This document shows, one piece after another, positions 9,001 through 50,678 of a DNA stretch of 64,000 nt. The translations under genes and the position numbers were made by a program. Position 1 is the first letter of the stretch. Every line of letters begins with the position of its first letter. Origin of the DNA: Chlorokybus atmophyticus (Eukaryota; Plantae; Mesostigma and Chlorokybus algae); the NCBI GenBank assembly GCA_009103225.1, contig RHPI01003156.1, positions 536,537-600,536 on the forward strand. Direction: 5' to 3'. Under the pieces are notes generated by a model. The model did no database searches and was not told the origin of the DNA. It saw only the letters and a list, made by a program, of their open reading frames with translations.

Positions 9001-11608
9001 TGTTGACATATGCTAGCACCAGGGAGGGGTGGGAGGAGGCGGCAGTCTGCAGCCAGCACACCGGAGTTCAGTGGCGAGCAGAGCACAGCTGCTGCCGGGT
9101 TGCAGACCGGTGCAGCGGAAGGTAAACATGCATGGTGCGTTTTACGTGTGCAATCACTCCAAGCACAATCCATGCAACATTGATTGGCATTGCAGTGAAG
9201 CGGAAGCGAGGGCGGCCACGGAAACGACCCATAGAACCCAGCCAACCTACAGCCGCGCCGGCAGAGCGAGGTGAGGTAGCGTTTTGCACATGCAACAGCA
9301 GCAGTTGAGTGACGGCCATCAGCCACAAGTCTAAGTTGGCAGCAGCTGGCATATCACACCCCTGTATCTGTATCTCATAGATTGGGTGCTCTGTTGCTGT
9401 CCGTGTTGCAGTCCACATTTGTTGTTCTCTATGGCTGTAGCTGTGTGATTGCTCTGGGCCAATGCCTTGTCTGCGAAACAGCTTCAGGAAGAGCCGCAAG
9501 CCATGGGCACCTGAGCCACAGGCAATCTGGCAGTACACAATTGACACGGCAACTGGAAACCGGCGCGGGGCCATCTTCATTGGTGAGCTGTACGCACCCA
9601 GTCAACCTGCGGGAATGCTGTCTGAACTTAAATCCGGTCTAACTTGTCCAACGCTCATGGCCAACGTCAGCCCCTTGCCATCAGGTGGGTGCAGCAGTGG
9701 AGGGCCGCATTGATGGAGCCTTTGACAGTGGCTACTTCGTGACTGTAGCTTGTGCAGCGGCAAACCACACCTTCAGGGGCATCCTGTTCAGTCCGGTAAT
9801 TGTTGTTCTGCCTATGTGCGTCCGCTTGGTATGCGTGTTGGACCGTTGCGCTCTAACAAAGTGCACATCGCAATATGTTGCAGGTTATCGATGTGCCACC
9901 CTCTGATGTGCACAGCACCGCGCTGTCTGTCCAATCAACACCGCCGATGCAACATTGTCATGCAGCGTCTCATATGGCAACGCAGGCTGAGGAAGCCCGC
10001 CACCCACCAGCATACCCAAACCCAGTTGCACGACAGTTGTCACCATCCTTCCCATTAGGATTGCAAGCGTTCAACCCGCTAGGTAGGTGATTGCATTCAA
10101 CCCTTGCGTAGCCACAAAACAATGGCTGCTTGGGCACCCTCTATCCGCTGACATTCTTTGATCCAGGGTTGGTTCTTGGCCAGCCAGAGGGTCGGCCGCA
10201 GCAGCAAGTGTTGCAGGCGCCTCAAACAGATGTCGGCGCATTCCTGCCAATGCGTGAGGTGCGATGTCAAAACACAATGGTTGCATTCCCTTTTGCTTAT
10301 CGCGGTGGTTGTCTGCGCATACTTACATACGTACAGTTCGTTCACTTGGTGAGAGTCGTTGAAGGCCCTCACTTCATCATGACAGCAGGTGTCACGGCCT
10401 TCTACCTCCACAGCAAGACCGCTGCCGCCAAGTCCTTTGCTGCGTTCGTTTCAAGGCAAGGGTGTTGCAACTCGTTGTGATTGTCTGACACCGCACTGAC
10501 ACTGCCTTTCCAGGCCTTGCTCCCTTGCCTGCATCTCACAGTCCCACAGATGGACCCTGGGAGCAACAGCCGCAACAGCAGCCACAGCAGCCTATGAGGA
10601 CACCCTTCTCAGCTGCTGGGCGGCAGGTACGAATGGTGCTGACAGCAGAAAGCCTCTTTTCTCTCCTTCCTTACGAGGAGTGTGGAGTGACTCGCTGTTA
10701 ATATTCCACGCGTATGCAGGAGCAACTTGCAAGGCAAAGCGCATATGCTGAGCAGGTACACTATACCTCAGTAGGCGTGCACTTGGAAACAACTGCTGTT
10801 GGGCTGATGCGCATCATCATTACTATCACTACAAGTCCCTGAGTGTCGATCAACAACTGCGTTTCTATGGTAGGCTGCCAGGCAGAGCATGCTTCACGGT
10901 TTCAGGCCGGATATGTCTCCCTTGTTCACACTTGAAGACACCCGACAGGAGCTGATGCAGGAGAGCCTGATGCAGCAGCTCAGTCAGCAGGTAACTTCTG
11001 TGTCTTGTCGTAATTGCAACACAGCTTGATGCCAACAAAGCTTGCAGCTGTAGTAGCAGCTTGACTGCATGTGAGCGTCATTGAAGTTGCAATTGGATTT
11101 TCCAGCAGGCGCGACACGCTCAACACTGGCATACTGGCATCCCAAGCATGCAATTGGACTCAGTGGCGCAGGTACGTGCTGCTATACCTGGTCTGTTATG
11201 ATAGATTGCGATACATAACATGCATTGAACGAATTGTGACTTTACGCGTTCGCCACAGAGCGTCTCTCACTCCGCGTTCAGCCAGATTCTGCTTCACAGC
11301 CCCTCTCCTAGGTACATCGTCTTCAGTGCATTAAGTGACATCGCCATCACATTCAATGCAGTCTTACAACATTATCAGGTGTCATTGTTGACATTACTTC
11401 ACAAACATGCACGTTTCCACACATGGTGGGTGCTGTGGACAGGCCAGGTCAGATGAGAGTCATGCCACCGTTTGGGACTGAAGCGTCCACGTCATCCGCA
11501 CCGGCACTCACACACAATGAACCGCCGGAGCCTGCTGTCGGCAATATTATGTCGTCAACACACTTCGACTTGAACGATGTCGGAAGAGGGGATGGCGCGG
11601 GACTCTAG
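6077..11608 (+). CDS. Kelch-repeat protein with HMG-box-like segment, AT-hook and a GAFDSG-type C-terminal domain; multi-exon, both ends uncertain, spans an assembly gap
   Basis: About six kelch repeats (GRWGHAS..YVFGGYG; PRDSHSG..LLVMGG; RESHTA; ARDSHAA..VLVFGG; GRFAHSA..LVVFGG). HMG-like YIAAVTQNLRAGNPQATDAEVN...RQWAMLPDEEKAQYY (~8215-8410). AT-hook KRKRGRPRK (~9197-9225). VGAAVEGRIDGAFDSGYFVTVACAAANHTFRGILFSP (~9687-9795). Gln/Pro-rich tail. Core exons have GT-AG borders; the start (MAEPDEVQP) and last exon are tentative. Confidence 0.75.
8771..8939. other. Assembly gap (N run) after a poly-C tract
   Basis: Run of N in the sequence. Confidence 1.
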
Positions 11609-24045: not shown

Positions 24046-27000
24046 TCAATGACTTGTAATGAAACCATTTGCAGACTCCATGACAGAGGTGGAGTCCACA
24101 TTGGCGGCACGAAGCACACCCGTCAGCCACCGTTGTGCCTTGTCCGCCAAGAGCTCCCACTCACTGCAAAGGGATGCGAGTTTCGCCTTCAGGAAGGCCA
24201 GTGAGAGGGCCGTGCCCACGATGTCAGCGCGTCCTTGCGTTATAGCGGGCAGCAGGTCCTTGACATCGTCCAGCGTCACGGCCATCACCGCCGCCAACTC
24301 CTCCGTGAGCGAGAAGGACCCGTTTGAGCTTTGCAGCAACACAAGGCGCTCCAGCTTCGCACGCTCCACATCACCACCTGTCCTCTCCACCGCGCCTTGC
24401 TGCTCCTCAACATCATCCATATCCACAGCGGACCTCATATATATGTTGGAGCTGGTAGCATCCATACTCAAAGTCGGTGGAGCTGTATAACTCTCATCCC
24501 TTGCAGGAGTGTAACACTCGTCCCTCGCGTAGCGGTAGCGCATAGTCGAATTGCGTGCCTTGGCTTCAAGGGCCCCAAAGCTGCCTGGTACACTCCCCGA
24601 TGGAGCCTCCCCAGATTTGGGCATGAGCGACTCATCTGGTTTGGCTCCAGAGGCCCCAAAGTTGCCATAGGCAGCCGGTGATGAACCCACCTGAACATTG
24701 GGCGTAGTTGCCATTTGTGGGTCGACTGGAGAGCCCGCCCCTAACTGGATCATTCCAGGGCCGGAAGTCCGCCCAGAAGGCATGTACTTGGACCCAGGTG
24801 CGGGTGCGGCCATGGGCGCAGCAGCAAACGCTTGCTGCGGCATTGCTGGTGGCGGAGGTGTGGCACCGAACAAACTGTTTTTCTTGAACATACCCGTGAA
24901 ACCCGACACCACCCCCCCGAAGCCACCTCCACTGAAGCCCCTGGAGCGAGAAGTGACGGGGAAGCCCGTAGAAGCGCTTAGGAACCTGGCTTGGCTGGCG
25001 GGCGGGTACACCGGTACAGGGCGGGCCTGCATGGGCAAGGCGACCTTCTCACCGTCAGCGCGCTCCTCAACGGCGATAAATGCGGTCTCTGAGGACGCCA
25101 GCCCGAACCGCACGGCGATGTCAACTATCTCCCTCTTCAGATCGCTCTCGGAGGGCTTGAAGAGGACATCTTGGTGCAGATGGCTAGAACCTGTGACAAT
25201 CACGGCTGAGTTGTCTGTGTTGTGGTGGTGGTGGTGGTACTTATTGTTGCTTTTGCTGTTGCTGTTACAATTGTGTGTATGGCCAAGAGATAATGTTCAG
25301 ACATACCTTCTTCAAAGTCTCGAATGAGGGCTCTGGCAGCCATGCGGTGCACAATGTTGCCGCGGTAAGTGTTGTTGGGTTCGGCGGGCAGGGTGACAAC
25401 CAGCGGCCCGTCATTGGGAGTCTGTGCTGTGATTGTGACGGCTGAAGGCAACGCCGTGCCGGGCTTGAAGAAAGCGTACACGAGGAAGCGAGTGTTGCTG
25501 AAAACCGGAGGCACGCTGAACGGGGCCTGTTTCACTGCGCTGTTGCTTGCAGGAGGAGGGTTGGGAGCCTGTTCGCTTGGGGGTTTAGGCTTGAAGAAAC
25601 CCAACAAGCTCTTCTCCTGCTTCTGGTCTTGCTTGGACTCCTCCTTTGGCGGCTCAGGTGGTGAGGCAGCTGGCGGTGAGGCAGCAACCCCCCAATCAAT
25701 CTTGATGTCGGTCAGAGCGGGCTGCAGCGCCTGCTTAAGCTGCTGTATCACCGTCTTCTCTATCCGCTCGTTGCCATGCACAAATTCCGCCGTGCCCTTG
25801 CCTGCCCGAGCGATGCCCTGCATGCAAGTAAACATGAACCTTCACGTGTCTGCCAACCTAACATACACTGCGCAGGCGATAGCGCATACCTGCACGAGAT
25901 GGTGGCTGACACCATCGCCGATGCCGAGTGCAAACGTGCGTGCGGTGTTGTTGTGCGTCCTCACAAGGGAAAGGACCGCTTCCGTGTTGAACACCTGGCC
26001 ATCGGTGTACACAAACACCTGCCTGGTGTAGCCCGCCTCCTCCACGCGCGGCATGTTGTAGACCGCATGGAGCGGTTGCAGTATCTCTGTACCGCCGAAG
26101 TTGGCGTCCAACATTGACGCGTATTGCGCGGCTTCACGGAGGGTGCGATCGTTGTACTTCACGCTTTTTGGGAACAACATGTCGAAGTGCGAGCCGAAGC
26201 CTACAATGTTGAAGTAAGCATCCTGCGGCATTGATCTCAGACAAAGCTGAAGTGCCGCTCGGGCCTGCGATATCTGCGGCCCCTCCATTGAGCCGCTCCG
26301 GTCGATGATGAAGATCAGTTCAGTCTTGACATCATCGAGCTCAAAGCGTGGCACGAGTGTAATCATAGCCGCGCTTGACCCATCCTCATTGGTCTCAATG
26401 CAAAGGCGTGGCTTTGAGCTCTCTTCGGTGCTCACAAGTAGCACCAAGTCTTTGTCCAGAGCAGCCGAAGCATACAGAAGATGTGCCTCGCCCTTGACGC
26501 CATTGATGTCGCTCTTGATTTCGTGCGTCGGGGACGATATTGACCGTATCGCTGATAACATATCAAAGTGGATGTGGATGTTAAGTGCATAGCTGCCGGC
26601 ACCATCGCTGCTCAAGTCGTAGTGTATGGGCAGCTCAGTCCCCGTCATCGGCGTGTAACGTGGCGCAACCGTCGTTGGGAGGAGAAACCTCACTTCATCG
26701 CCGTGCAGTTGCAGCTCCGTCACGTAAGTTATTGATATTACCGCCGTACCCCCGGGCGGCAGATTGCCCACTTTCAGCTGGAAAATGTCAGGCTTCTCCT
26801 GCTGCAGCAAGTACGCCCCATGCCCTGCATGCACTTATTGAGGTGGCATTGGGGGCTATATGCACGCGGCAACTACCCGTTGACGTGCGCAAACCCATGC
26901 ATGGACCCACAACACGCACGCATATATGCATATGTGCGTGTGCGTGCACGCACGTGTGCACACACATGCATATGCCCACACATCGCGTGCACACACACAC

Positions 27001-37700: not shown

Positions 37701-39453
37701 CCAACATGTATCTTTAGACGTACCTATCGATAACGGTCGGTAGGGAAAAGGTACCATGAGGTACCTGTTAGTCACACTGAGTTAGTGTACAGTCACCGGT
37801 ACATTAACTGTACCTAACCAACATGTACCGGTTAGTCGTCGCAAATTTTACACGGTGACTGACAAGAGACTGAGGGACTGACAAGAGACTGACCATATCT
37901 GACCCTAACTGACCTAACGAGTTGGGCCATTAAGGGACTGAAATGGACTGCCGGTGCATTTTGTGACCTATACTCAATTACCGACCGCCTATTGTACAGT
38001 ACAGTGGATTGTTGCCTACCGGTGGTGACGTGACAGCAACATATGTTGACAGCCGACCGCCGGTCATACAGCTTCCGTAACGGCAACCTACCTATTATGA
38101 CAATTAAGTGTACATTCAGGCCCCTAATGGCGACGGTCGATACCGGTGAGTCAGAGTTGACCCGCGGACGGCCGCCGGCCGTACATTAGCCGCGGCGGCG
38201 ACCAACCTACATTGGTAAGCTAATGACCACTCAGTCCCAACGAAGTCTCCTAAAAGGGACGAGCGATGGCGGCGGGTACCTGTCAGTCCGGTTAGGTATA
38301 CTTGGCACCCTCATGGGAACAATAGTACCATTACAATGGTACAACAGTTCCATTAAAGTACCCTAGATGGTACTCATTATGTGATTGCACAATGGAGCCA
38401 TCGTACCATTTTTATGGTACGATCGTACCATTGACTTGAAGCCGTTGAGCGTTTAAACCGCAGCAGCGTTCAAACGCTCAACGGCTTCAAGTTCGAGGAC
38501 AGTTGTGCGGCGGCGGCGGCAGTAGTGGCGGCGGTGGCGGCGGCGGCAATTGCAATGGCATGGTAGGTGAGTTTGATTATATGTGTCATGATGTATGATG
38601 CCATCATGTTGGCGCCCTTGCCGACCAGGCCAGTGGAGGAGGAGCGGCGAGGCGGCGGCGGCGGAGGAAGAGCGGCGGCGCAGGCGGCTGAGTATAAGGG
38701 TAGAGTATAGAGTAGTAGTAGTAGTAGTAATAGTAATAGCTCAACATAGTTTACATTGTAGCGTAGCAACAGTTTGTAATTTAATCCATGGGTACTTTTG
38801 TGCATCAGTCAAGCCTATAACTCGCCGTCTCTCACAGTTGACGACAATCACATGCATGCAGTATGCAGCACATGACTGAACGGTACCGGTAGGTACCGGT
38901 AGGTACTGGGGACATTAACGTCAGTTACCCTAAAAGTATCATAAGGTACCCCAAAGGTACTAGATAGTTAGGCACCCTTGAGGTACGGTTGCCGGTACCT
39001 AACTGTTAGGTACCGGTTAATTAGGTCAAGTCCCTTTTGCTTGACTGATGGGTATTTGACAGGTACCTGTCAATCTCGGTCAGTCCCTTTATTAAAACGG
39101 CTGCCGACTAATGGTGACGGCCGTTATATCAGGTCCCTGTATCGAGATTATAGGTGGACTGAGCCACGACAGTCCAAATAACTATCGTTTGGTGCACGGC
39201 CGTTGCCAATATTCAATCGGCCGGCAGGGGAAACATTTTGCGACGGTTAGGTTAAGTCCCTTTTGCGGGTATGTAACTGACAGGTATCTGTCCGTCCAAG
39301 TCCCTTTGTGCAAACGGCCGGGGACAGCCGTTATACTCAGGTCCCTGTATCGAGATAACAGATGGACTGAGCCACTACATTTTAAATAAGTATTCTCAGT
39401 TGCACGGCCGTTGCCAATATTTGGACGGCCGGCAGGGGAAAAATATCGCGACG
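34706..39453. mobile_element. Fold-back complex of three diverged ~1.2-1.5-kb non-coding units (U1 34706-36249 forward; U2 ~36690-37835 and U3 ~37836-39246 reverse) plus a duplicated end (39250-39453)
   Basis: CCGTCGCAAAATGTTTCCCCTGCCGGCCG..GTGCACC at 34706 pairs with its reverse complement ending at 39246 and again at 39453. 35470-36249 pairs with ~36690-37410. Unit ends share CGTCGCAAA(A/T)T. Units contain GGTACC and GTACCAT arrays, GCC/CTA low-complexity tracts and a central hairpin. Confidence 0.8.
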
Positions 39454-39632
39454 TTTCGAAGTTTTGCTCCACCATAGTATATATGCTGTGCTGTTAGGCA
39501 CACAGTCAACAAGCCACTACTATAGGTAGTGCTGTTACACGGTTCTTTGCATGAGTAGAATTTGTATTGCACTGTTAAGTGAGGTGAGTGCGCAAGCAAC
39601 GCGTGGATGCTATGCCTTTATTGATCCCCACA

Positions 39633-39711
39633 TGTAACGGGAAGGTACATTAATTTTTCACAAATCAACCATAAAAGTGCCAAGTCTTTTGCGGTCGAGT
39701 GGGCTGTGACA
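39633..39711 (+). repeat. 5' LTR (79 bp)
   Basis: TGTAACGGGAAGG...GAGTGGGCTGTGACA. Confidence 0.88.
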
Positions 39712-39746: not shown

Positions 39747-40243
39747 TGCTTTGCACACGAACTCCGCGGTCGTTGTTTCTCGATCCAATAATATCGTAAA
39801 TGGTCACTTCCAGTCAGGACGCCAGAGGCCTTCTGCTATGGTAGATTGCAGGAAACGGACGGTCGCGATGACGTCTTGCTACGTAGTACGACAGTGAGGT
39901 GTTAGCGAACACAGCTGCTCGCGTGGCGTGTTCAGTGCTCGTGTAGCTGTGTTGGTCGACGCTGTGCCGACAGTGATCACCGTTTGTTAACGGTAGTGAA
40001 TCAGCCGTTGGCGAACGGCTTTCTTGCGAGAATAGTGTCGGTTAGTGCTTCTTGATACCCGTTGCTCTCGGATTTGTGTATCTGCTTCTGTCGTGTGGTT
40101 GTGTTTGACATCGCTGATCGACAGTGGATATCTAGGCTTGCCAACGGTTGTTGTTTCAAATGTTGAAGGATAAATGGGGCGGGCGAGTTGAGGGAGGGTG
40201 AGTGGCAGTGTGTGCTGTGAGTGTCCTGTGAGTGCCGGCGGCG

Positions 40244-43200
40244 ATGGCGGAGGAAGCATCTGTGCACTTGCTTGTCGAGGAGCAACGTCGCAGGTTGGAT
40301 GAGGTGGAGGCTGTGAGGTGTTCACGCAATGACAATCAGCGTGAGTATGCAAAGCGGCGCAGGCAGGAAGACAAGTACTATGTGAACCAGCTGAAGGCAG
40401 AGTGTGGTCTGGTGAAGTCGCGGATGAATGCTACCGGTGTTTTCTTGCATGCGCTGACTTGTGGGAAGGTCTGGCGATGGGAAGGTGACAACCTCGTTCT
40501 GATGAAGGTGCGTGGTGCATGCCCTGGTGCACGTAACATGGCATGTGACTGATTGCAGGCGCACAGCGTGGCATTGTGTACTTTGTTGCTGAGTATTTGC
40601 ATGCTGTTTGCCCTACTTTGTCTTTTCCGTGCCATGCTGCGTTGCCTCTGACCTATCTTGAATGCTCTTGCGTTTTGTCTGCAGCCTGGAGAGCGTCGCG
40701 CTGTCCGTTGTGCTACTGGACAGGACTCGCAGGTAGTAGGTGTTATGCGCATGTGTGCATGTATGGATGTAATGGCAGTGTATTAAAACTGGAGCTGACA
40801 CATGTGTTCTAGCACGACGTGGACTTGGATCAGTCAGATTCAGACGAGGAAGAAGACCGGGAGGACCAGGAGAACATCTGTCTAGATTCCACTCAGCAGC
40901 GCAAGAGACAAAAGCAGCACCAGCCTGGTTTTCAACAGCAGGTCCCCTCCATACTTGCGTTGCATCAGCCATTGCATCAACACTCTCGCGTGGATCGAGA
41001 TGGCAATCGGGTCACGCTAGGGCCCATCATGAACAGGCTCCACAATTCAAGGAGTGCGCAGAAACCGCCCAGGACACCACATGCTTCTGGCCCAGGTGGG
41101 CGCCAGGGCTAGGGTGTCAAAGTTACTCTATCAGTGGCGACGCCTACAATGCTCCTTACTGGTAGCGCTCATAAGCTGAAGCAGCCTCTAGACGTTGCTG
41201 TTTACTCAGTGTTGCTATGCTGTACATAAGGCAATAAAAGTGTGAAGAGTACCTGAATGCCCGTTGTGTTGTGTGTGCAGACAATGTGAGGACTGCCACT
41301 GTGCATGCAGACACTGCGTACCGGCAGACCCGTGTGTTCAGCCAACTGGAGGTACTCGCAGTGTGTGTGGATGAGTGAATATGCATTATGCACAGTGGGC
41401 TTGTGCGGTTGGCACTGGGGGGTATAGGATATTGCAAGGTATTCATGTGTTGGAGGTGCTACATATATCTGCGAACGAGTCCTCGCAATGTGATGTATGA
41501 CTTGCATGATCGGCCACACGTGTACAGGCTGGTGTACGATTGCATATGCAAGATTGCACCTATAAATGTGTACTGAATTGCCTAGTGTGTGTTGCTAGTT
41601 CATGAGGCTCGAAGTGCAAAGGTTGTCCGCCGAGCTTGACTCCATGGGCGTGGTCAGAGACGGGTTGAGGAAGGAGGTTGAATGCTTGTCAGCAGCGTTG
41701 AGGGAGAAAGAAGCTGAGGAAAGTAGTCACACTGCCACCGAAGTGGGGGAGGCGAGGCAGCAGGCCCAACTTCTGCGTGAAAAAAACACAGTGAGCCGTG
41801 TTGATCATGTGGCAGGCCTGCAACTGCGTTAACCACGAGGAGGATGTTGAAATGTACCTGATTGTCTGACCTTGTAGGAATTACAAGAGCAGCTGCGGCG
41901 CAATGTCGCAGAGGATAATAAGCGGAGACAGGAGGCTGCGTGTGCCATACAAGACCTGAAGGATGAGTTAGAGGATGTGCAGCAGCATGCAGAGGTAGGG
42001 TGCCTGGTGACAAACACATTGCCTCATGCTATGCACGCTTGGTGCATGGGTCTCATGCTCGATACTGAACAGGTGTTGGAGACTTCTGTGCGAGAGGGGA
42101 CTGAGTTCATGAATGCAGAGAGGCGTCGGCGGCTCAGGGCTGAGCGTGATCTGGAAGGTTACCGCGGCAAGCTGGTAGAGTTGGAGGATGTAATTGCGGG
42201 TCTGCGGGAGACAGTGCGTACGAGTGGTCTTCCACGCCCGTCGCAGTATGACGCCCACGTGGCTGATGAGGTGCGGCAGTTATATGAAGGCGGTGTCCAG
42301 GAAGCTGCGAGTGAGCAGCCCGATGAGCCTCTGGGGTGTGCTGTTCGTGATGTGGCAGCGCTGCTGCTGCCAATAGACGCAGTAGTTTTCTTAACAGCTG
42401 TGGCTGCCAAGTACAACATCACTCCAGCACGCATCCTGATGAGAGCGGGTAATCAACGATTGCCTGGCGCTGTGGTGGTGGTGACTGGGGCCAGGCAGCA
42501 AGGCACCTTGCTGATCGCTGCATGGTCCGACCCTTTGCGCTGCCTGTTGCGTCATGGGATGAGGGTGACTGAAGTGCCTGTCAGCACACAGAGTCAACGT
42601 GCCACTACAAGTGCGCCAGAAGGTGATGAGCTCCCTGATGCAGTGCTGCGTACACTCGACAGGCTAATGGATGCTGAAAGGCAACGTCAAGTGGAGCGCA
42701 ACAAAGTAGACCCAGACCTGCGCGTAGTGGACTGGAAAGATGAGTGGGAGAGCTCTGGGACTGTGCTGCGACGGGTATTCGGGGCCCTGACTGGGTATAA
42801 TGCCATGGAGAGGGTGCAGTCACCAACACCTGTGCAAGTGCGGGCTGCAACCATGCAGCGCAACAAAACCCTGTTCCTGATGCACAGCACACTGTATGCG
42901 AGGAGCAAGTTTGCGTACTCAATACTGCACCTGGTGGTCACTGATGAGGTGGACATGCACTCTCAAGGCAACAAGCTCATTAAGACACTGAACCGTTTGG
43001 GGGTGGCTGTCAGCCGCAGTCATATTGATCGTCACATCCACTCCAGAGCCCTCAACAACCTTAACTCCATGGCGAGGCTGCAGCCGCGACCCGGCATGCA
43101 TGTGCTGGCATCGATAGACAACCTGGATATCAAAGCAGGACATCAGGCCAGGTATAAAGGCAGGAAGGGCGGAGACATCCATGCAACATCAACTCAACTG

Positions 43201-46200
43201 ACCTCAACACAGGGGCGTGCAGCCAACGAGCCATTGCCATTGCAGGTATTATTTGATATGTTACTGGCACGTCAGCAATGCATGGGAAGATGAAGTGCTG
43301 ACAAGCAATACTGTGTGCCTGTTGCAGCCATCCAGGAACCGAACTCTGGCTGAATCGATGATAGCAGAGCCTCAAGCAGACCCCATGCCGATGCCAGCCG
43401 CCCTGCCACGCAGAGCTGCGGTGCTGCAAAGTGGCCCCATTCTCAACCTGCAACCAGCGGAGACGGAAGCACTTGAGTGCTTCACAAACAATATGCTCAA
43501 TACTGTACTGCTCCGCATGCAACAAGATGATCAAGCCTCGCTGCCGACTCTGAAGGAGGATTGGGCGAGGTACATGCAGTTGTCAACTGGAGAGACCACT
43601 GTTGTGAAGAACGACATCGAGTACCTGCCTGTGCTTCCATTCTGTCCAGACAACATTGACAATCTCAAGCATGCGCTGTTGCAACTGCGTGCCAAGGTGG
43701 GCATCACCGATGCGAATGGCAAGATATGTGTAACCGGCGACCAGAAGACCTTTTCACTGATGCATGCCCTCAAAAAGGCAGAACCTGGATACTGGGAATG
43801 GGTGGTGCCACTGCCTGGAGATTTCCATGTGTTGATGAACATGCAGTCGGTGCTGACCAAAATGGCGTGGGATGCTGAGCTGGATGCACTGTCTTTGGAA
43901 GCGGGATTCTCTGTATCAACTGCCCGCAACCACATAGCGGACGGGTCTCACTGGAAGAAGATCCACAACTTCTTGGTCAAAGCTTGGGAGGCCCTAATCA
44001 GACACATGTTCATGCTGTGGGAGGAGGCAGAGCGGGATGAAGTCCTGCGCATGTGCAGAACATACTTGGAGCAGAACGGGGTCAGTGCCACCAAGACCAC
44101 ATCCTTTTTCAGACTGTGGTGCACAGAGCAGGCGAAGTCTGATCATACATGGCAGTTCTGGTGGAACTTTGTCAACCGTGACATGCTCAATTACCTGGGT
44201 CTCTTTTGCTCAGTGCGCCAGAAGATTTGGCACTTGAGGCTTGCAACATGGAAGGGTCTGAGCCCGCTCCCATTTGCCTGGGATTGGTACCACTACCAGA
44301 AGGTGATGACACTGCATCTCGGGGACCTGCAGCAAATGCCTTAGGATCTGCGTGACATGTTGGAATCGGGTGGCTTTGCATTGAGCCTCACCGGAGCAGC
44401 CGGTAGGATGGTGGCGCTGGATGAGGCGCACGAGTGTCAGGTGAACCGTGATATGAAGATGTCATTGTGCAGGCCAACTACTGAACAGCTGCGGCAAAAG
44501 TCATTGTACCTGGGAGAGCGCAGCCAATCTCATAAGCAATTCCAGAGGCAGTTGCTGCTAGACAACGAGCTGTTGAACAATGACCTCAACGATGATGCCG
44601 ACGACGACCACAACAGGGTGATGCGTATTTTGACGACAGATGCCTCACGATGTGGCAGTGATCTACAGCACATGTCCACGCTGCTCATCAACAGTCAAGC
44701 ACTGGCACGACCTCACCAGCAGCAGTTGCTACATCTGACATCCGGAGCTCCGGCATCAGCAGCTGCTTCCGCTGACCTGGCCCGCCAGTACTAGGTCGGG
44801 TTAGAGGCTTTGAAATCATTCGTGGAGGTCGAGTTGTGCCGAGAAGCAGCTCCTTGCAAAGTCAGTAGGCGATTCAACCTGAAAACAATGGCGGCTGCCA
44901 AGAAGCGAGTTACCAAACAGGGCACAGTGTTGAAACAGTACAGACAGGAAATGCTGGTCGTCAAGCGCCTTGCTGCAACAGGAGCAGACAAGGACGCTGT
45001 CACTGCCCGATACCGTGAACACCCTTGGGCATTATTCGAAGAGTCAACAGGCAAGATGAGGTCGGGCGATAAATCCAAATTTCTATCTGAAGTGGCTGGT
45101 CATGATGCACCATGCTGGAGCCGCATCTCGCCGCCAGGCGTGGAGTGCATCATCCTCGAGGGCATGTTCCTCATTAACAAAGAGCCACAGATCACCCAAG
45201 GCAAGATTAAGGACTACATCAGCCACCTGATGCGTACCTCAGTCCTGAGCCGTCTCGCCAACCCCACCGTGCGTAGTGTGCATGTCGTGTTTGATACACC
45301 TAGACTGCAAACCGGTGTGAAGTCTTCCCTGCAAACTGCACGGGATGGTACAGCCAGAGCATCCGGAGGATGCCTCACTCTGGACACGGAGCTACCCAGG
45401 TCTTGGCGGGATATCCTCAAGGACAGGAGTCTGAAACGCTCGCTGTGCGAGCTCATCACAGAGCATATGCCGGCCTTACTGGCAGAGCACCTGCGCCCAG
45501 ACCAAGAGGTGGTGTTCGCCGGCGGTTCAGACCACCAGCAACAGGGTGACTTTGCACGCGTGGTGGCATGCGACATGAACAATGCCACATCCATCAGCCA
45601 TGTTGAGGACTACATTTGCAATCATGGAGAGGCGGACTCGAGAGTGTGGGTGCATGCGCACAACGCTCCCTACAACAACATCCTCATTTACTCACCAGAC
45701 ACAGACGTCACGATGATCGGGGTTGCCGTGACTGAGCAGTGGGACACCTCCTTAAAGGAAGTCACCGTGCAGGTAGCGCAGAATTCCTCCGGATCCACGC
45801 GCCCTCCCTTCATAAACCTGAACATCCTGCGCCAACACGTCAACTGCATGTATCAACTTAGCAGCATGCCTGAGGGTATGCGTGGATGGTTGCTGCTTGT
45901 GGTCTATACAGCCACTGGCAGCGACTACACTTCATTCATTGGCGGCATCTCCAAGCAGTTCATCTGGCGCACGGTCCTTGCGCAGCACACTGCGTTCATC
46001 ACTGGAGATGTTAGCGGTGAAGAACATGAGATGTGCTTTGCAGTGCTTCGTCTGCTCGGATGCTCATACTTTGAGAAGTACCGATCGTCGTTTGATAGCG
46101 GCACACCAGCTTCGCTGTACTACGAGTTGCACGGGCCTGATGCTACCACATCCGACAAGGTGTATTTGGGGGACTGGTTGGAAGCCATCCATAAGACGGT

Positions 46201-46717
46201 ATGGAAGAAGATTGCTACCCCCAGGGATACTATGCCGACAGTCGATGCACTGTGGTTGCACGCGTTGCGCGCGGTGTATGCAGTGCAGATGTGGATGCAA
46301 AGCTGTCAGTCCGATATGAACATGCCTGACCTGTCCGAATATGGCTTTGAGGAGGCAGATGGAGTGTGGACCGCAGTGCAAGACCTCGCAGAGAACATGG
46401 AAGTCGCCAAGAACAATAGGCATCGGCTGATGAAGGGATGTGCCTGCAAGACCTCCAGCTGCAGGGGCAAAAGGTGCTCGTGTAGAAAGGCCGGCAAAGC
46501 CTGCACTGACAGCTGCCAGTGCCTGGGATGCGACAACCACAGTCACACCAGCCACAATGCAAATGGACATGTTTCGGGAGTCACCGCGTCACACGCGCAG
46601 ACGCCCCTAACTGGGGCAGGCCATACAGACGACGACATTGACTGGGAGTTTCAGCAGACGGACGACAGTGACAGCGACATCGAAGACCTCACTCACATGG
46701 ACTTGGACGACATCTAA
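40244..46717 (+). pseudogene. Academ transposase-XPG nuclease-CXC protein, spliced, with two in-frame TAG codons
   Basis: Coiled-coil 5' exons (structure tentative). Transposase core: SIDNLD, VTGDQKT, PLPGDFHVLMN, ALDEAHE. XPG/FEN1-like acidic motifs: LEGMFL, HVVFD, NHGEADSR, SPDTDV, TGSDY. C-terminal CACKTSSCRGKRCSCRKAGKACTDSCQCLGC. Intron 43246-43327 joins frames. TAGs at 44342-44344 and 44792-44794 are in frame, with no frameshift from 43328 to 46717. Confidence 0.88.
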
Positions 46718-46878
46718 CTGACCCCTCCCGCAAAGGCCATTACTACAGAGTTGTTGAGGCGATCTCACATTTTTAGGGTTGACCGCACAAAATCAGGGCA
46801 CAGTCCATATCGGCGGCGACGGACGGTGGTGTGGCGTCAGAAGCGCTCTGCTGGTGTGGCCTGTTGTCGTCAGCCTCC

Positions 46879-48549
46879 ATGGGGTTGACTGCATTGATAT
46901 GTGACGTCTGCAACGCATTCGTCGTCAACAATGGTCAGCGGTCACGTCTGAATCGCCACAAACAACAATGCCAGCAATACCTGGGCTGGTTTGGCTACAC
47001 TGCGGCGTGCTGGCATCATCACGCTGCAGGCCTTCACATCCTGCAGTGCAGAGGCAAGGAACGATGCATCGCTCCAGAGTTTTACAACAGTCAATGCCAG
47101 TGCAGTGAGTGTCAATGCTCTCAATTTGAGTGGCATGGGCAACCCATGCGTTACATGCCATACGTCAGGCCAGGCAGCACACCACAACCACAACAAACTG
47201 CAAGACCAAAGGTATTGCACTGCTCTCAAGTGCATGCTTGCCTGATATAGAGTTGAGCGATGTGTGAGTGACCCACTCATACGTGCGGCAGGGGAGGCGG
47301 CCGCGATGTGGTCGCGGTCCTTCTGCAATGCCATTATCGCACAGCGTCGAGAGTACCAACACCCACCCGCAACCTGGGACAGACACACGTGCCATGGAGT
47401 TGAGGGCGCGTTGTAGCAAGGGTGGCCCCTTTTTGGTGGGCTACAATGTGCTTGTGTACTGGACAGCGGACGACGAGTGGTATGGGGGCACCATTTACAA
47501 CTTCAACCAGCAGAACAGTAAGTGTTCATTGCACACACACACTGCGCTGCGCTCACCTCCTTGGACGGGCACTCACTGTTGGCTGCCGCTTGCATCAGAA
47601 CGCCACAGCGTGCGGTTCGACGACGGTGATGTGCAACACCTGCACATCCCCTTGCACAACATTGTTGTAACTTTTCCTGCCAATGGCAGCATCAGCTGCC
47701 ACCGAATCGGAGGACAGCGAGTTCAGCAACATCGCAAAGCCAATCCTCCTTGCACAGTTATCCCTTTGTGGTCCGAGTCAACAGCACTCTTACTCACAAG
47801 GACTCACATACGCGGTGATGGTGTTCCACATCGCCCCAAGTTACTCGACCTCTGCTGTGGTGGAGGTGGAGCCAGCATGGGAATGTACCGAGCAGGCTTC
47901 GATGTCACTGGCGTGGACATCCAATCACAGCCAGAATACCCATTCCCATTCATCCAAGCAGATGTGCTGACCACCGACCTGCAACCATACGACATCATCT
48001 GGGCTAGCCCGCCCTGCCAAGCGTACGCGAGTTGCATCCCAAAATCCCAACGTCAGCGTCATGCAGACCATTGGCAACACAGCACGCTGCTCCCTGACCT
48101 TCGCAAAGTACTGCAAGACAGTGGGAAGCCTTACATCATCGAGAACATACCATCCGCCGCAGATCACATGGCATCAAACTTGGTGCTATGCGGAACCATG
48201 TTCGGGCTTGCTACCTTTCGGCACAGACTGATTGAGACCAAGCCCATGCTTACCTTAGACTTGGTGTGCGATCACGCATCCAAGAGCTTAAGCTCCCTAT
48301 CCTCACACACGACAACAAGAGTCAATGCCCAAGACTCGCAGGCAACACAACAGATGTTCCCTGTCTACGGGAAAGCAGCATCTCGTGGCACACTCACCGG
48401 TTGGCAGCAAGCTCTGGGCATCGAATGGATTTCATTCAGAAACCACTTTAGTCGAATGCATCCCCCCCGCTTACTCAGAGTACATTGGCAGGCTGATGCT
48501 TGAGCACCTAGGGTACACAGTGAACAGCAGACCATTATCATGGTCATGA
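46879..48549 (+). CDS. Cargo gene: putative Zn finger/Cys-rich + Tudor-like domain + C5 DNA-cytosine methyltransferase (phage/bacterial type); +1 frameshift near the C-terminus
   Basis: Exon 46879-47211 (CDVC..x12..HKQQC, Cys-rich). Intron 47212-47291. Tudor-like LVGYNVLVYWTADDEWYGGTI..|HSVRFDDGDVQHL with intron 47518-47598. MTase motif I LDLCCGGGGASMG, GVDI, catalytic IIWASPPCQAY, motif VI YIIENI, LCGTMFGL..FRHRLIE. An extra T at 48447-48449 shifts motif X (LVECIPPAYSEYIG); stop TGA at 48547-48549. Confidence 0.85.
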
Positions 48550-48969
48550 CATAGAACTTGGGCTAGTCTACATCGATACACACAGAGCAAGCACGTTATT
48601 AACATGCAGTTGTTGCTATGTACAAGCTGGTCAAAGCAGCTGTCTAACCAACCACCAACCCCGAAGACAGGATCAGTGTGCCTCACGACTTCGTGCACAG
48701 CTGGGCAACATGCACAAGTGTTCATTGGGGTTGTGCACAGCACACCACATCCACACCCATGCAAACTGAAATGAAGCACACCACACAAACAAATCAGGCA
48801 TTGTCCCTCAGTACAAATGCACTCGCAGTTGCTAGCTGCATCTCCACTAATGCACGTTGCGCAACGCTCACCGGTGAGCACAGACAATGCTACATGTACA
48901 AGACATAGCAGTTAGCAGCAGAATTAACCATGACACATCAAGCAGTGCCAACAACTGCTACCAACCTAG

Positions 48970-50145
48970 GCCGGTGTCTCTTGCATATGGCAATTAGCCT
49001 CCTGGAGCTTGGTTGCGCGCGTGCGAATGAGGGGCTGCATCAACGCGTTCAGCGAGACTTCAACAGGCATTGCTCTACCACTCAGCAGAGCAGTATATCA
49101 AGCCAACACAGGAGCACGCAAACAGTCAGCATACAGCAGCAATTCTTATACACCAGCATGGCATCGACTGCAAAAGTACAATTGCGAACACTGTACCATG
49201 TTGGAGCGGAAGTACTGGCTGCCACCCACCACCCTCCACTGCAGGAGGCGGGTGAGGCAAACCAGGATTGCCATCATCACCATGTTCGCCACCTTGCAGC
49301 ATATGCAGGCTCCACTGCCCAATCTCGAACGGCAACCACTCAGTGTCATGCCACTGCTCGACCCAATGTCGTCGGCGACCCGGCTCCATATCACAGTCAG
49401 TGCCAATAACCCAGCGTGCTAAGACAACCCCCCCCACTACATGCTCCACAACCAACAAATCACTACTCAAGCGCAGAGGCAAGCCTCCACCACGCCGTAC
49501 ACGGTGCAAACTATACCGGAACCCAAACCCACCCGGCAACTCCACATGCAATTCCCTCAAACCATCGCCCAATGGAACCCCAGACGCTGATATGCGCACT
49601 GGACATCCCAGTGGCACCTAACAACAGACACACAGTGAATGTTGGCAACATTCCAAGACGCACATTACTGCCGCATGCAAACACCTAAAGTAAAACAATT
49701 TAGTTAGACAGCCAGCATGCTCACCTGTTCGTAACCAGATTGGTAGAACGATCCACTACGCCTGATATGCGGCAAAGGACCGCCTATCGATACAGACACA
49801 CTCAGTGGGGCGTGGTCGTCATTAACGCCGGGCGCAGCCATCACACCCAGAACACCGACAGCCACAACGAACCCGCCGCCAGGACCACAACTACCCGCCA
49901 AAACCCGCACCCCAAACAGGGCGATATCACCGCCAGCCTCGATATCGACTTAACCAAACGCAATATTTTAACAACACGGCTACACCATCAACCACTGACC
50001 GACAGCGCTGTCCACCGTTTACCCTAAACTGCAAATCCTTTACGCAACATAGCCCACAGTCACACAGCGTCGGCACAAGGCTGATCGACAGCACAAGATC
50101 GACATCTTCAACCACTGATTCGACACTGATCCAGCGACGCAACAA
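48970..50145 (-). CDS. Possible third, spliced gene of unknown function inside the Academ element
   Basis: Codon-like minus-strand segments (LRELHVELPGGFGFRYSLHRV; HWVEQWHDTEWLPFEIGQW; ...GSFYQSGYEQ|GTGAGC donor). Strand composition mirrors GT-rich sense introns. Exon structure not resolved. Confidence 0.35.
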
Positions 50146-50599
50146 AGCACCTCAAACCGTCCAAATTCGTGGCGGATACAACCACCTAGACGGTGTCGAT
50201 AATCGTAGCACAACACAGACAAACGTTACGCAACAAAGCGACACAGCTCGTCCACAGCACCCACAGAGCTCATCGGGCCGGTTTAAGCTTTGCCTGGGCG
50301 GAAGGCCTCTGGCGTCCTGACTGCTTCATAAGTGCCATCATCCAAAGGTCGCGACTTGCCTAATGGCAGTCGCGTCTGACTGACCAGTTCAGTCGGCGCG
50401 GCAGGACGCGACCTGCCTGTCGCGATGCGACCTGTGGGGCCGGCAGCGGTGCGCTATGCGCGCGCTGACCGGTATTGGCCTAAATTGGCCGGTCCTTGGG
50501 TGGTGGGGCCGGTGACCGACCCTAAATCAGACCCCTGGGAAGATTCCCCAGCTGATGGGCGCCAGCTGCCGAGGACGTCAGCGTTCTTAAGTGGGGGGA

Positions 50600-50678
50600 T
50601 GTAACGGGAAGGTGCATTCAATTACCACAAATCAACCATAAAAGCACCAAGTCTTTTGTGGTCGAGTGGGCTGTGACA
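50600..50678 (+). repeat. 3' LTR (79 bp)
   Basis: TGTAACGGGAAGG...GAGTGGGCTGTGACA, preceded by a polypurine tract at 50589-50599. Confidence 0.88.

Follow-up and report, generated by a model that had tools for sequence, protein, structure and literature searches.

The streptophyte green alga Chlorokybus atmophyticus carries a DNA transposon of 10,513 bp (10,521 bp including the duplicated target) which is probably a structurally complete element of the AcademX type. It lies in a window of 64,000 nucleotides, the whole stretch of DNA that was analysed (assembly GCA_009103225.1, contig RHPI01003156.1, positions 536,537 to 600,536 of the forward strand). The element represents a diverged green-algal AcademX-type lineage that carries a cytosine methylase gene, and the copy in the window is structurally complete but genetically dead, three small mutations having broken its genes. 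The Academ(X) features that were tested are all present, namely a DDE transposase fold, a fused XPG-fold nuclease, a CXC finger, a 4-bp target-site duplication (TSD) and terminal inverted repeats (TIRs).

The ends of the element are exact. The two TIR arms match at 25 of their 26 nt; they agree throughout the first 23 nt, CAGTCAGGACGCCAGAGGCCTTC, and differ at position 24. Within the window this 23-mer occurs at just two sites, which are the ends of the element itself. CTTC stands on both flanks directly outside the arms, as a 4-bp duplication that cannot be extended, seen here at a single insertion. The perfect 23-bp TIRs and the CTTC duplication, both proposed in an earlier note made from the letters alone, are thus confirmed. 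The element is flanked by two direct repeats of 80 nt (39632-39711 and 50599-50678), which share 90% identity; without the transposon they would be 446 bp apart, and the insertion therefore landed inside another small repeat. That an ordinary gene cluster came to be flanked by the inverted repeats and CTTC through chance has a negligible likelihood, since a perfect 23-nt inverted match appeared in none of 100 dinucleotide-preserving shuffles, the repeats exactly bracket the transposase genes with the 4-bp duplication outside them, and the insertion splits the pair of direct repeats. The transposon has neither a second copy nor an empty site in the 64-kb window, where both were searched for, and a search of JGI metagenome contigs for its TIRs found none.

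One of the element's two genes is a spliced polyprotein gene of ~1,650 codons on the + strand, whose exons and motifs are given in Table 1. Full-length relatives align colinearly with window positions 42790-46654 in tblastn (E down to 4e-110, 26-29% identity), among them P0283 (1449 aa), P0143 (1740 aa, from the crinoid Antedon), P0177 and P0133, and the full-length animal relatives, which span 1,300-1,750 aa, exhibit the order DUF6589, nuclease, CXC. The exon for the N-terminal part of the transposase is in frame 1, open from 41878 and with a canonical donor at 43246, and the intron that follows it has homology on both sides, in different frames; a frameshift mutation is a much less likely source of this change of frame. 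Further upstream, a first coding exon is tentatively predicted, whose ATG at 41602 sits directly after an in-frame TAG and for which no homology support was found. The earlier note had described a DDE-XPG-CXC polyprotein of ~1,500 or more aa within a 10.5-kb, multi-gene and intron-bearing element. The second gene and the introns are indeed found, and the polyprotein is real, being colinear with its relatives, but its frame is not open, as it holds two TAG codons. The description is also corrected in that the exon bearing the first catalytic Asp is linked to the rest of the gene through at least one intron (43246-43327).

The transposase part matches a single transposase family in Pfam, DUF6589 (4.9e-10, above the cut-off), and the Pfam models of the P, hAT, KDZ (Kyakuja-Dileera-Zisupton) and Kolobok transposases have no match to the open reading frames (ORFs) of the element. 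When 1.84 billion representatives were searched in full with HMMER, 652 transposase relatives came up at E<=1e-3, none of them closer than 44%, and the D, D and E motifs of the window align with those of the relatives. Because the window's own protein is split, the fold was modelled on a natural relative, P0134 (~30% identical, all motifs present), with a 53-sequence alignment. The model (pLDDT 84, pTM 0.84) has the order b1-b2-b3-a1-b4-a2-b5, insertion, E helix, which is the order of RNase H, with the first Asp on strand 1, the second just after strand 4, and the Glu on the helix that follows a helical insertion of ~200 residues. When compared with 48,161 chains by VIA-align, it scores highest with the P-element transposase (Z 12.7, 342 aligned), followed by Hermes (9.4) and ISCth4 (9.0), and lower with RAG1 (6.9), Tn5 (6.5), Transib (5.5) and retroviral integrases (5-6). 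Foldseek returned weak Hermes rows only (E 2e-2).

Nine homologues are known for the C-terminal portion of the polyprotein, a 635-aa ORF (44810-46717); they come from Amphimedon, from Mytilus and from further eukaryotic contigs, and two of them contain DUF6589 in the same protein. The nuclease was established by fold, because Pfam and PDB sequence searches gave no XPG match; the PDB searches, for which the ORF and a 14-sequence profile served as queries, returned the LIN54 CXC and a weak match to the helix-three-turn-helix (H3TH) of EXO1 only. The model of the ORF (pLDDT 60 overall, 70-90 in the core) resembles EXO1 (Z 13.2, 261 aligned, root-mean-square deviation 4.0), FEN1 (12.7) and XRN2 (11.5), and then XPG (11.2), GEN1 (10.9) and Rad2 (10.6), while Foldseek lists XRN1 at 1e-6 and FEN at 3e-4. 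The core is thus predicted, from this model, to be a Rad2/XPG-family 5' nuclease fold fused to the transposase. Seven acidic residues (E117, D162, E274, D276, D297, D299 and D372) are invariant in the homologue alignment, and the GSDY..GI motif aligns with the H3TH of EXO1. The C-terminal finger is a CXC module of the tesmin/TSO1 type, as in the LIN54 match, and is kept in P0001, P0002, P0006, P0283, P0143 and P0154. The locus of the best nuclease relative (L001) is a partial element with no methylase.

Nearest to the transposase core stands a gene model of C. atmophyticus itself (P0130, 44% over the matched stretches), and a second model from this species (P0141) is among the top dozen; the remaining named relatives come from marine invertebrates only. 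No contig was retrieved by exact look-up of either the window's ORF or P0130. In a maximum-likelihood tree built by a quick method from 55 rows and 529 columns, the window's stop being read as X, the element groups with the two Chlorokybus models with an SH-aLRT of 99, a Logan protein being their sister, and the branches in this group amount to about one change per site. The presence of the Chlorokybus models among the nearest relatives therefore places the superfamily in a streptophyte alga, and its extension to a green alga or streptophyte, which the earlier note had inferred, holds. Published accounts place Academ in animals, fungi and a red alga, and a bounded copy in a streptophyte alga widens this range. 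In a 2025 survey of 1007 green-lineage genomes, in which an Academ profile was included, recently active clusters were found in seven other superfamilies only (PMC12973397), and a literature search found no paper mentioning both Academ and Chlorokybus.

The second gene of the element is a passenger, which begins 677 nt past the polyprotein stop and codes for a Tudor-like domain and a small cytosine C5 DNA methyltransferase. The cargo list of the earlier note was right as to a second gene, yet it left this methyltransferase, the most unusual part, unnamed. Its homologues number 1547, mostly metagenomic proteins of 225-250 aa (best identity 50%), and many contain PF00145, for which the window protein itself scores 20.4 bits, below the cut-off of 22 bits. 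At the N-terminus three Tudor families of Pfam match at E 0.09-0.23, weak values obtained on unspliced exons, and Spin/Ssty, the PTM/DIR17 Tudor, Agenet and SAWADEE have Atlas scores of 0.79-0.87. Among the top three methylase relatives, P0012 is encoded at 10001-10843 of a compact 29-kb contig (L003, JGI metagenome 3300060284) whose other genes include those for topoisomerase II, the ribonucleotide reductase small subunit, a U-box protein and an aquaporin, and this contig looks like a giant virus. In the other two, P0011 (L002:2028-3050) and P0022, the variable region that separates the catalytic motifs holds a methyl-CpG-binding domain (MBD), which makes them a different reader-writer fusion on the same enzyme.

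The methylase might be private to this copy rather than a cargo of the family, either as a captured host gene or as a separate nested element, in keeping with the single copy examined, with the gene having its own ATG at some distance from the polyprotein, and with a methylase domain being found in none of the 12 long transposase relatives scanned. This is unlikely, as no TIRs, direct repeats or TSD were found around the gene, and its nearest relatives are viral or metagenomic and not host-like. The transposase family also seems prone to picking up accessory modules, as its members include P0160 of Amphiura filiformis, with an OTU protease, and P0197, with a NADAR domain.

The claim that the transposon is complete stands for its structure, with both ends and the TSD in place, but not for its genes. 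The first premature stop truncates the polyprotein ahead of the catalytic Glu, where the window reads HLGDLQQMP*DLRDMLESGGF and P0003 reads HLADLLTMPQSVITMLQQGGF. At the second, the window has DLARQY*VGLEAL and the Chlorokybus model P0130 has DLARHYTLGIEGF. Introns were considered as an explanation of the two TAGs and ruled out, since at either site the homologues stay colinear and keep their spacing; the two codons are nonsense mutations. In the methyltransferase, the match to the homologues runs in frame 3 as far as ~48434 and resumes in frame 1 at ~48448; this switch of frame, together with 55 nt where the homologues have 18 codons, marks a +1 frameshift which leaves motif X out of frame. 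All three lesions could instead be sequencing or assembly errors in a copy that is in fact intact and autonomous: the nearly identical TIRs and perfect TSD make the insertion look young, the frame of 1,129 codons is fully open outside the two stops, and the frameshift falls in a stretch with short homopolymers. Such errors are quite unlikely, as two substitutions that both give TAG are atypical of assembly error. The copy is therefore regarded as dead, and with its intact ends it could still be mobilised by an intact copy elsewhere in the genome.

At the position of the first TAG the homologues have Gln, Ser or Ala, so this stop may plausibly have arisen from CAG, a CHG site, through a change of C to T. 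That both stops are TAG gives at most a hint of decay driven by methylation, as it concerns two events.

P elements generate TSDs of 7-8 bp and hAT elements of 8 bp, and Kolobok targets TTAA. These values bear on a rival view in which the element is a member of another, perhaps new, DDE superfamily, akin for instance to P or hAT, that merely converged on the same layout, so that DUF6589 would not be the Academ transposase. Such an origin would agree with the P-element and Hermes transposases being the top structural matches and with the DUF label that Pfam gives the domain. It is nevertheless very improbable, for the TSD lengths of P and hAT and the target of Kolobok differ from those of the element, the Pfam models of the P, hAT, KDZ and Kolobok transposases do not match it, and the relatives come from taxa that bear Academ, bivalves and other invertebrates (PMC10294476). 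Moreover, the transposase-nuclease-finger layout with a TSD of 3-4 bp defines Academ/AcademX in the literature (PMC10045372; Kapitonov and Jurka 2010, through PMC5751038). AcademX combines a transposase with an XPG nuclease and has a TSD of 3-4 bp, whereas AcademH has a helicase and a TSD of 9-10 bp (PMC10045372). The element has a 4-bp TSD and no helicase domain, of superfamily 2 or Rep-like, in any of its ORFs, and is accordingly not of the AcademH type.

Several points weigh against the assignment of the element as an AcademX-type transposon with a methylase cargo. The name Academ is drawn from the element's architecture, the length of its TSD and the taxa in which relatives occur, and the transposase fold is that of P0134, at ~30% identity, rather than of the window's own split sequence. 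The XPG part that the earlier note recognised holds by fold and motifs, with no match of the Pfam models XPG_N and XPG_I to the ORFs, and the XRN exonucleases score nearly as high as XPG by fold. The Tudor-like assignment of the passenger's N-terminus is weak, and the methylase was observed in this one copy, its carriage across the family being putative. The tree was made by a quick method, and all four members of its green group are unusual in their amino-acid composition, a shared bias that could have raised the SH-aLRT support.

An intact copy of this AcademX-type element would produce one spliced polyprotein of ~1,650 aa. Its DDE transposase, with an RNase H-like core and a long all-helical insertion as in the P-element, hAT and RAG1 enzymes, would bind the 26-bp TIRs, excise the element and insert it with a 4-bp stagger, the repair of which would give the CTTC duplication. 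The transposase fold and the footprint of insertion are observed here, and the cut-and-paste chemistry is inferred. The fused 5' nuclease of the FEN1/EXO1/XPG type would most likely cleave or trim the second strand or a flap intermediate, and the C-terminal CXC zinc module, by analogy with LIN54 and tesmin, most likely binds DNA. The passenger would combine a Tudor-like reader with a small cytosine C5 methyltransferase, of a type known from giant viruses or phages; its likeliest, if speculative, role would be to methylate DNA at chromatin marked for the reader, whereby the element could influence its own silencing or that of its host. A more far-reaching reading can be put forward only tentatively: a long-lived and diversified Academ lineage in the earliest-branching streptophyte algae may have acquired the Tudor-like domain and the C5 methyltransferase of giant-virus ancestry as standing cargo. 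Among DDE cut-and-paste elements of cellular genomes it would then be the first with a demonstrated cytosine methylase of its own, used to shape methylation at or around its copies.

Academ, a rare type of transposon, is among the least studied transposon superfamilies. The element groups with two further diverged lineages of Chlorokybus, and its exact ends can be used to find other copies and empty sites; since the copy is dead, it serves to chart the family and not as a working element. As described by Kapitonov and Jurka (2010) and Kojima (2020), cited through PMC10045372 and PMC5751038, AcademX resembles the element in its single polyprotein of DDE transposase, XPG-type nuclease and Cys-rich finger, in its TIRs and TSD of 3-4 bp, and in its relatives in bivalves, echinoderms, annelids, amphioxus and a sponge. 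The element differs in its streptophyte green-algal host, as opposed to an animal, red alga or fungus, in its second gene for a Tudor-like C5 methyltransferase, and in forming with the Chlorokybus models a separate and deeply diverged group, at <=39% identity over the aligned core. In bivalves, where Academ is expanded, in keeping with the Mytilus matches, the mean element length is 5.6 kb (PMC10294476), about half of the 10.5 kb found here. AcademH, from fungi and animals, belongs by published account to the same transposase superfamily, but it has a helicase and a 9-10-bp TSD (PMC10045372) in place of the XPG-fold nuclease and 4-bp TSD. P elements and hAT (Hermes) share with P0134 the RNase H-like DDE core and the large all-helical insertion before the Glu (Z 12.7 and 9.4); unlike the element, they have other TSD lengths and no fused nuclease, and neither similarity to them at the sequence level nor a THAP or BED domain was detected in it.

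The methylase passenger is the more interesting part of the element. KDZ transposons of fungi reportedly carry TET/JBP genes, and hence, like the element, are DNA transposons with an enzyme that acts on cytosine methylation; they differ in having another transposase superfamily, to which no Pfam match was found here, and an oxidase instead of a methylase. Retrotransposons of dinoflagellates and Klebsormidium have already been described with a cytosine methylase of their own. Those of Symbiodinium and Klebsormidium, which carry a DNA methyltransferase (DNMT; de Mendoza et al. 2018, PMC5890265), are likewise mobile elements of algae with their own C5 methyltransferase, and Klebsormidium, like the host of the element, is a streptophyte alga. 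They are, however, LINE and DIRS retrotransposons with Dnmt3-type or other eukaryote-like DNMTs, whereas the element is of the DDE cut-and-paste type, and its DNMT of ~230 aa is of phage or giant-virus type and joined to a Tudor-like domain. Of DNA transposons with a DNMT, the same paper mentions only those of marine viruses (PMC5890265, citing Bao and Jurka 2013). If true, a cut-and-paste element that ties a virus-type methylase to a chromatin reader would mean that transposons have gained, a second time and independently, a way to interfere with the mark by which they are normally silenced.

Table 1. Features of the Chlorokybus element in window coordinates, with the evidence for each
Feature	Position	Strand	Evidence or remark
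Left TSD copy, CTTC	39807-39810	.	directly outside TIR
Left TIR, CAGTCAGGACGCCAGAGGCCTTCTGC	39811-39836	+	26 nt, 96% complementary to right arm
Predicted first coding exon, coiled-coil region	41602-41790	+	tentative; open frame, GTGAGC donor at 41791
Predicted intron, 87 nt, GTGAGC...TTGTAG, phase 0	41791-41877	+	splice signals and frame only
Exon, N-terminal part of transposase	41878-43245	+	tblastn and MAFFT alignment to P0283, P0177, P0143, P0191
First catalytic Asp motif, SIDNLD	43111-43128	+	relatives S[IV]DN[IF]D
IHATSTQ	43177-43197	+	relatives HGT[TS]xQ (P0283, P0177, P0143, P0191)
Intron, 82 nt, GTATTA...TTGCAG, phase 0	43246-43327	+	joins frame 1 to frame 2
Large exon: DUF6589 core, FEN/XPG-fold nuclease, CXC finger	43328-46717	+	Pfam, homologues, fold
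Second Asp motif, VTGDQKT	43730-43750	+	conserved GDxK
PGDFH	43814-43828	+	conserved PGD[WF]H
First premature stop, TAG	44342-44344	+	inside conserved HLxDxxxMP[Q/S/A]
Glu motif, LDEAHE	44417-44434	+	conserved DEAHE
Second premature stop, TAG	44792-44794	+	homologues colinear across
Nuclease motif GEAD	45623-45649	+	homologue alignment
Nuclease motif SPDTDV	45689-45709	+	homologue alignment
Nuclease motif GSDY	45914-45937	+	H3TH-like
CXC finger	46439-46531	+	Pfam TCR/CXC 1e-5, ORF residues 542-577
Polyprotein stop, TAA	46715-46717	+	end of frame 2
Passenger exon 1, first half of Tudor-like domain	47394-47517	+	ATG in context GCCATGG
Predicted intron, 81 nt, GTAAGT...CAG, phase 1, within Tudor-like domain	47518-47598	+	splice signals only; stop-free, in frame
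Passenger exon 2, second half of Tudor-like domain and small C5 DNA methyltransferase	47599-48549	+	homologues; stop TGA 48547-48549
Methyltransferase motif I, CCGGGG	47841-47876	+	in frame
Methyltransferase PPCQ (motif IV)	48006-48026	+	in frame
Methyltransferase ENI (motif VI)	48132-48149	+	in frame
+1 frameshift interval in methyltransferase	48434-48448	+	55 nt versus 18 codons in homologues
Methyltransferase motif X, IPPAYSEYIG	48460-48489	+	in +1 frame
Right TIR	50298-50323	-	inverted match to left arm
Right TSD copy, CTTC	50324-50327	.	directly outside TIR

The composition of the element and the content of the surrounding window were also inspected. The subterminal 2-kb regions exhibit a mirror-image GC skew (+0.21 at 40001-42000, -0.21 at 48001-50000), and the right one (48001-50000) is strongly A-rich, with an AT skew of 0.23 and no convincing ORF. 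No sign of a special hypermutation of the element is seen, its observed/expected CpG ratio of 0.67 being close to the 0.77 of the flanks. Just upstream of the element lies a pair of 120-nt repeats (39129-39248 and 39337-39456). The 64-kb window is eukaryotic, as seen from its GT-AG introns and its VIT-VWA, Kelch and aminotransferase exons; the other flanking ORFs had no Pfam match, and an Rfam search of the window found nothing. The VIT-VWA (VWA5A-like) host gene occupies several exons on the minus strand at 24046-26834. In a length-filtered search, with full-length proteins outside the filter, relatives of its VIT-VWA exon have 30-54% identity, and the best matches of the VWA exon are EukProt Awhi_evm1s11173 (51%) and metagenomic proteins, not plant ones, although the length filter may hide closer relatives.

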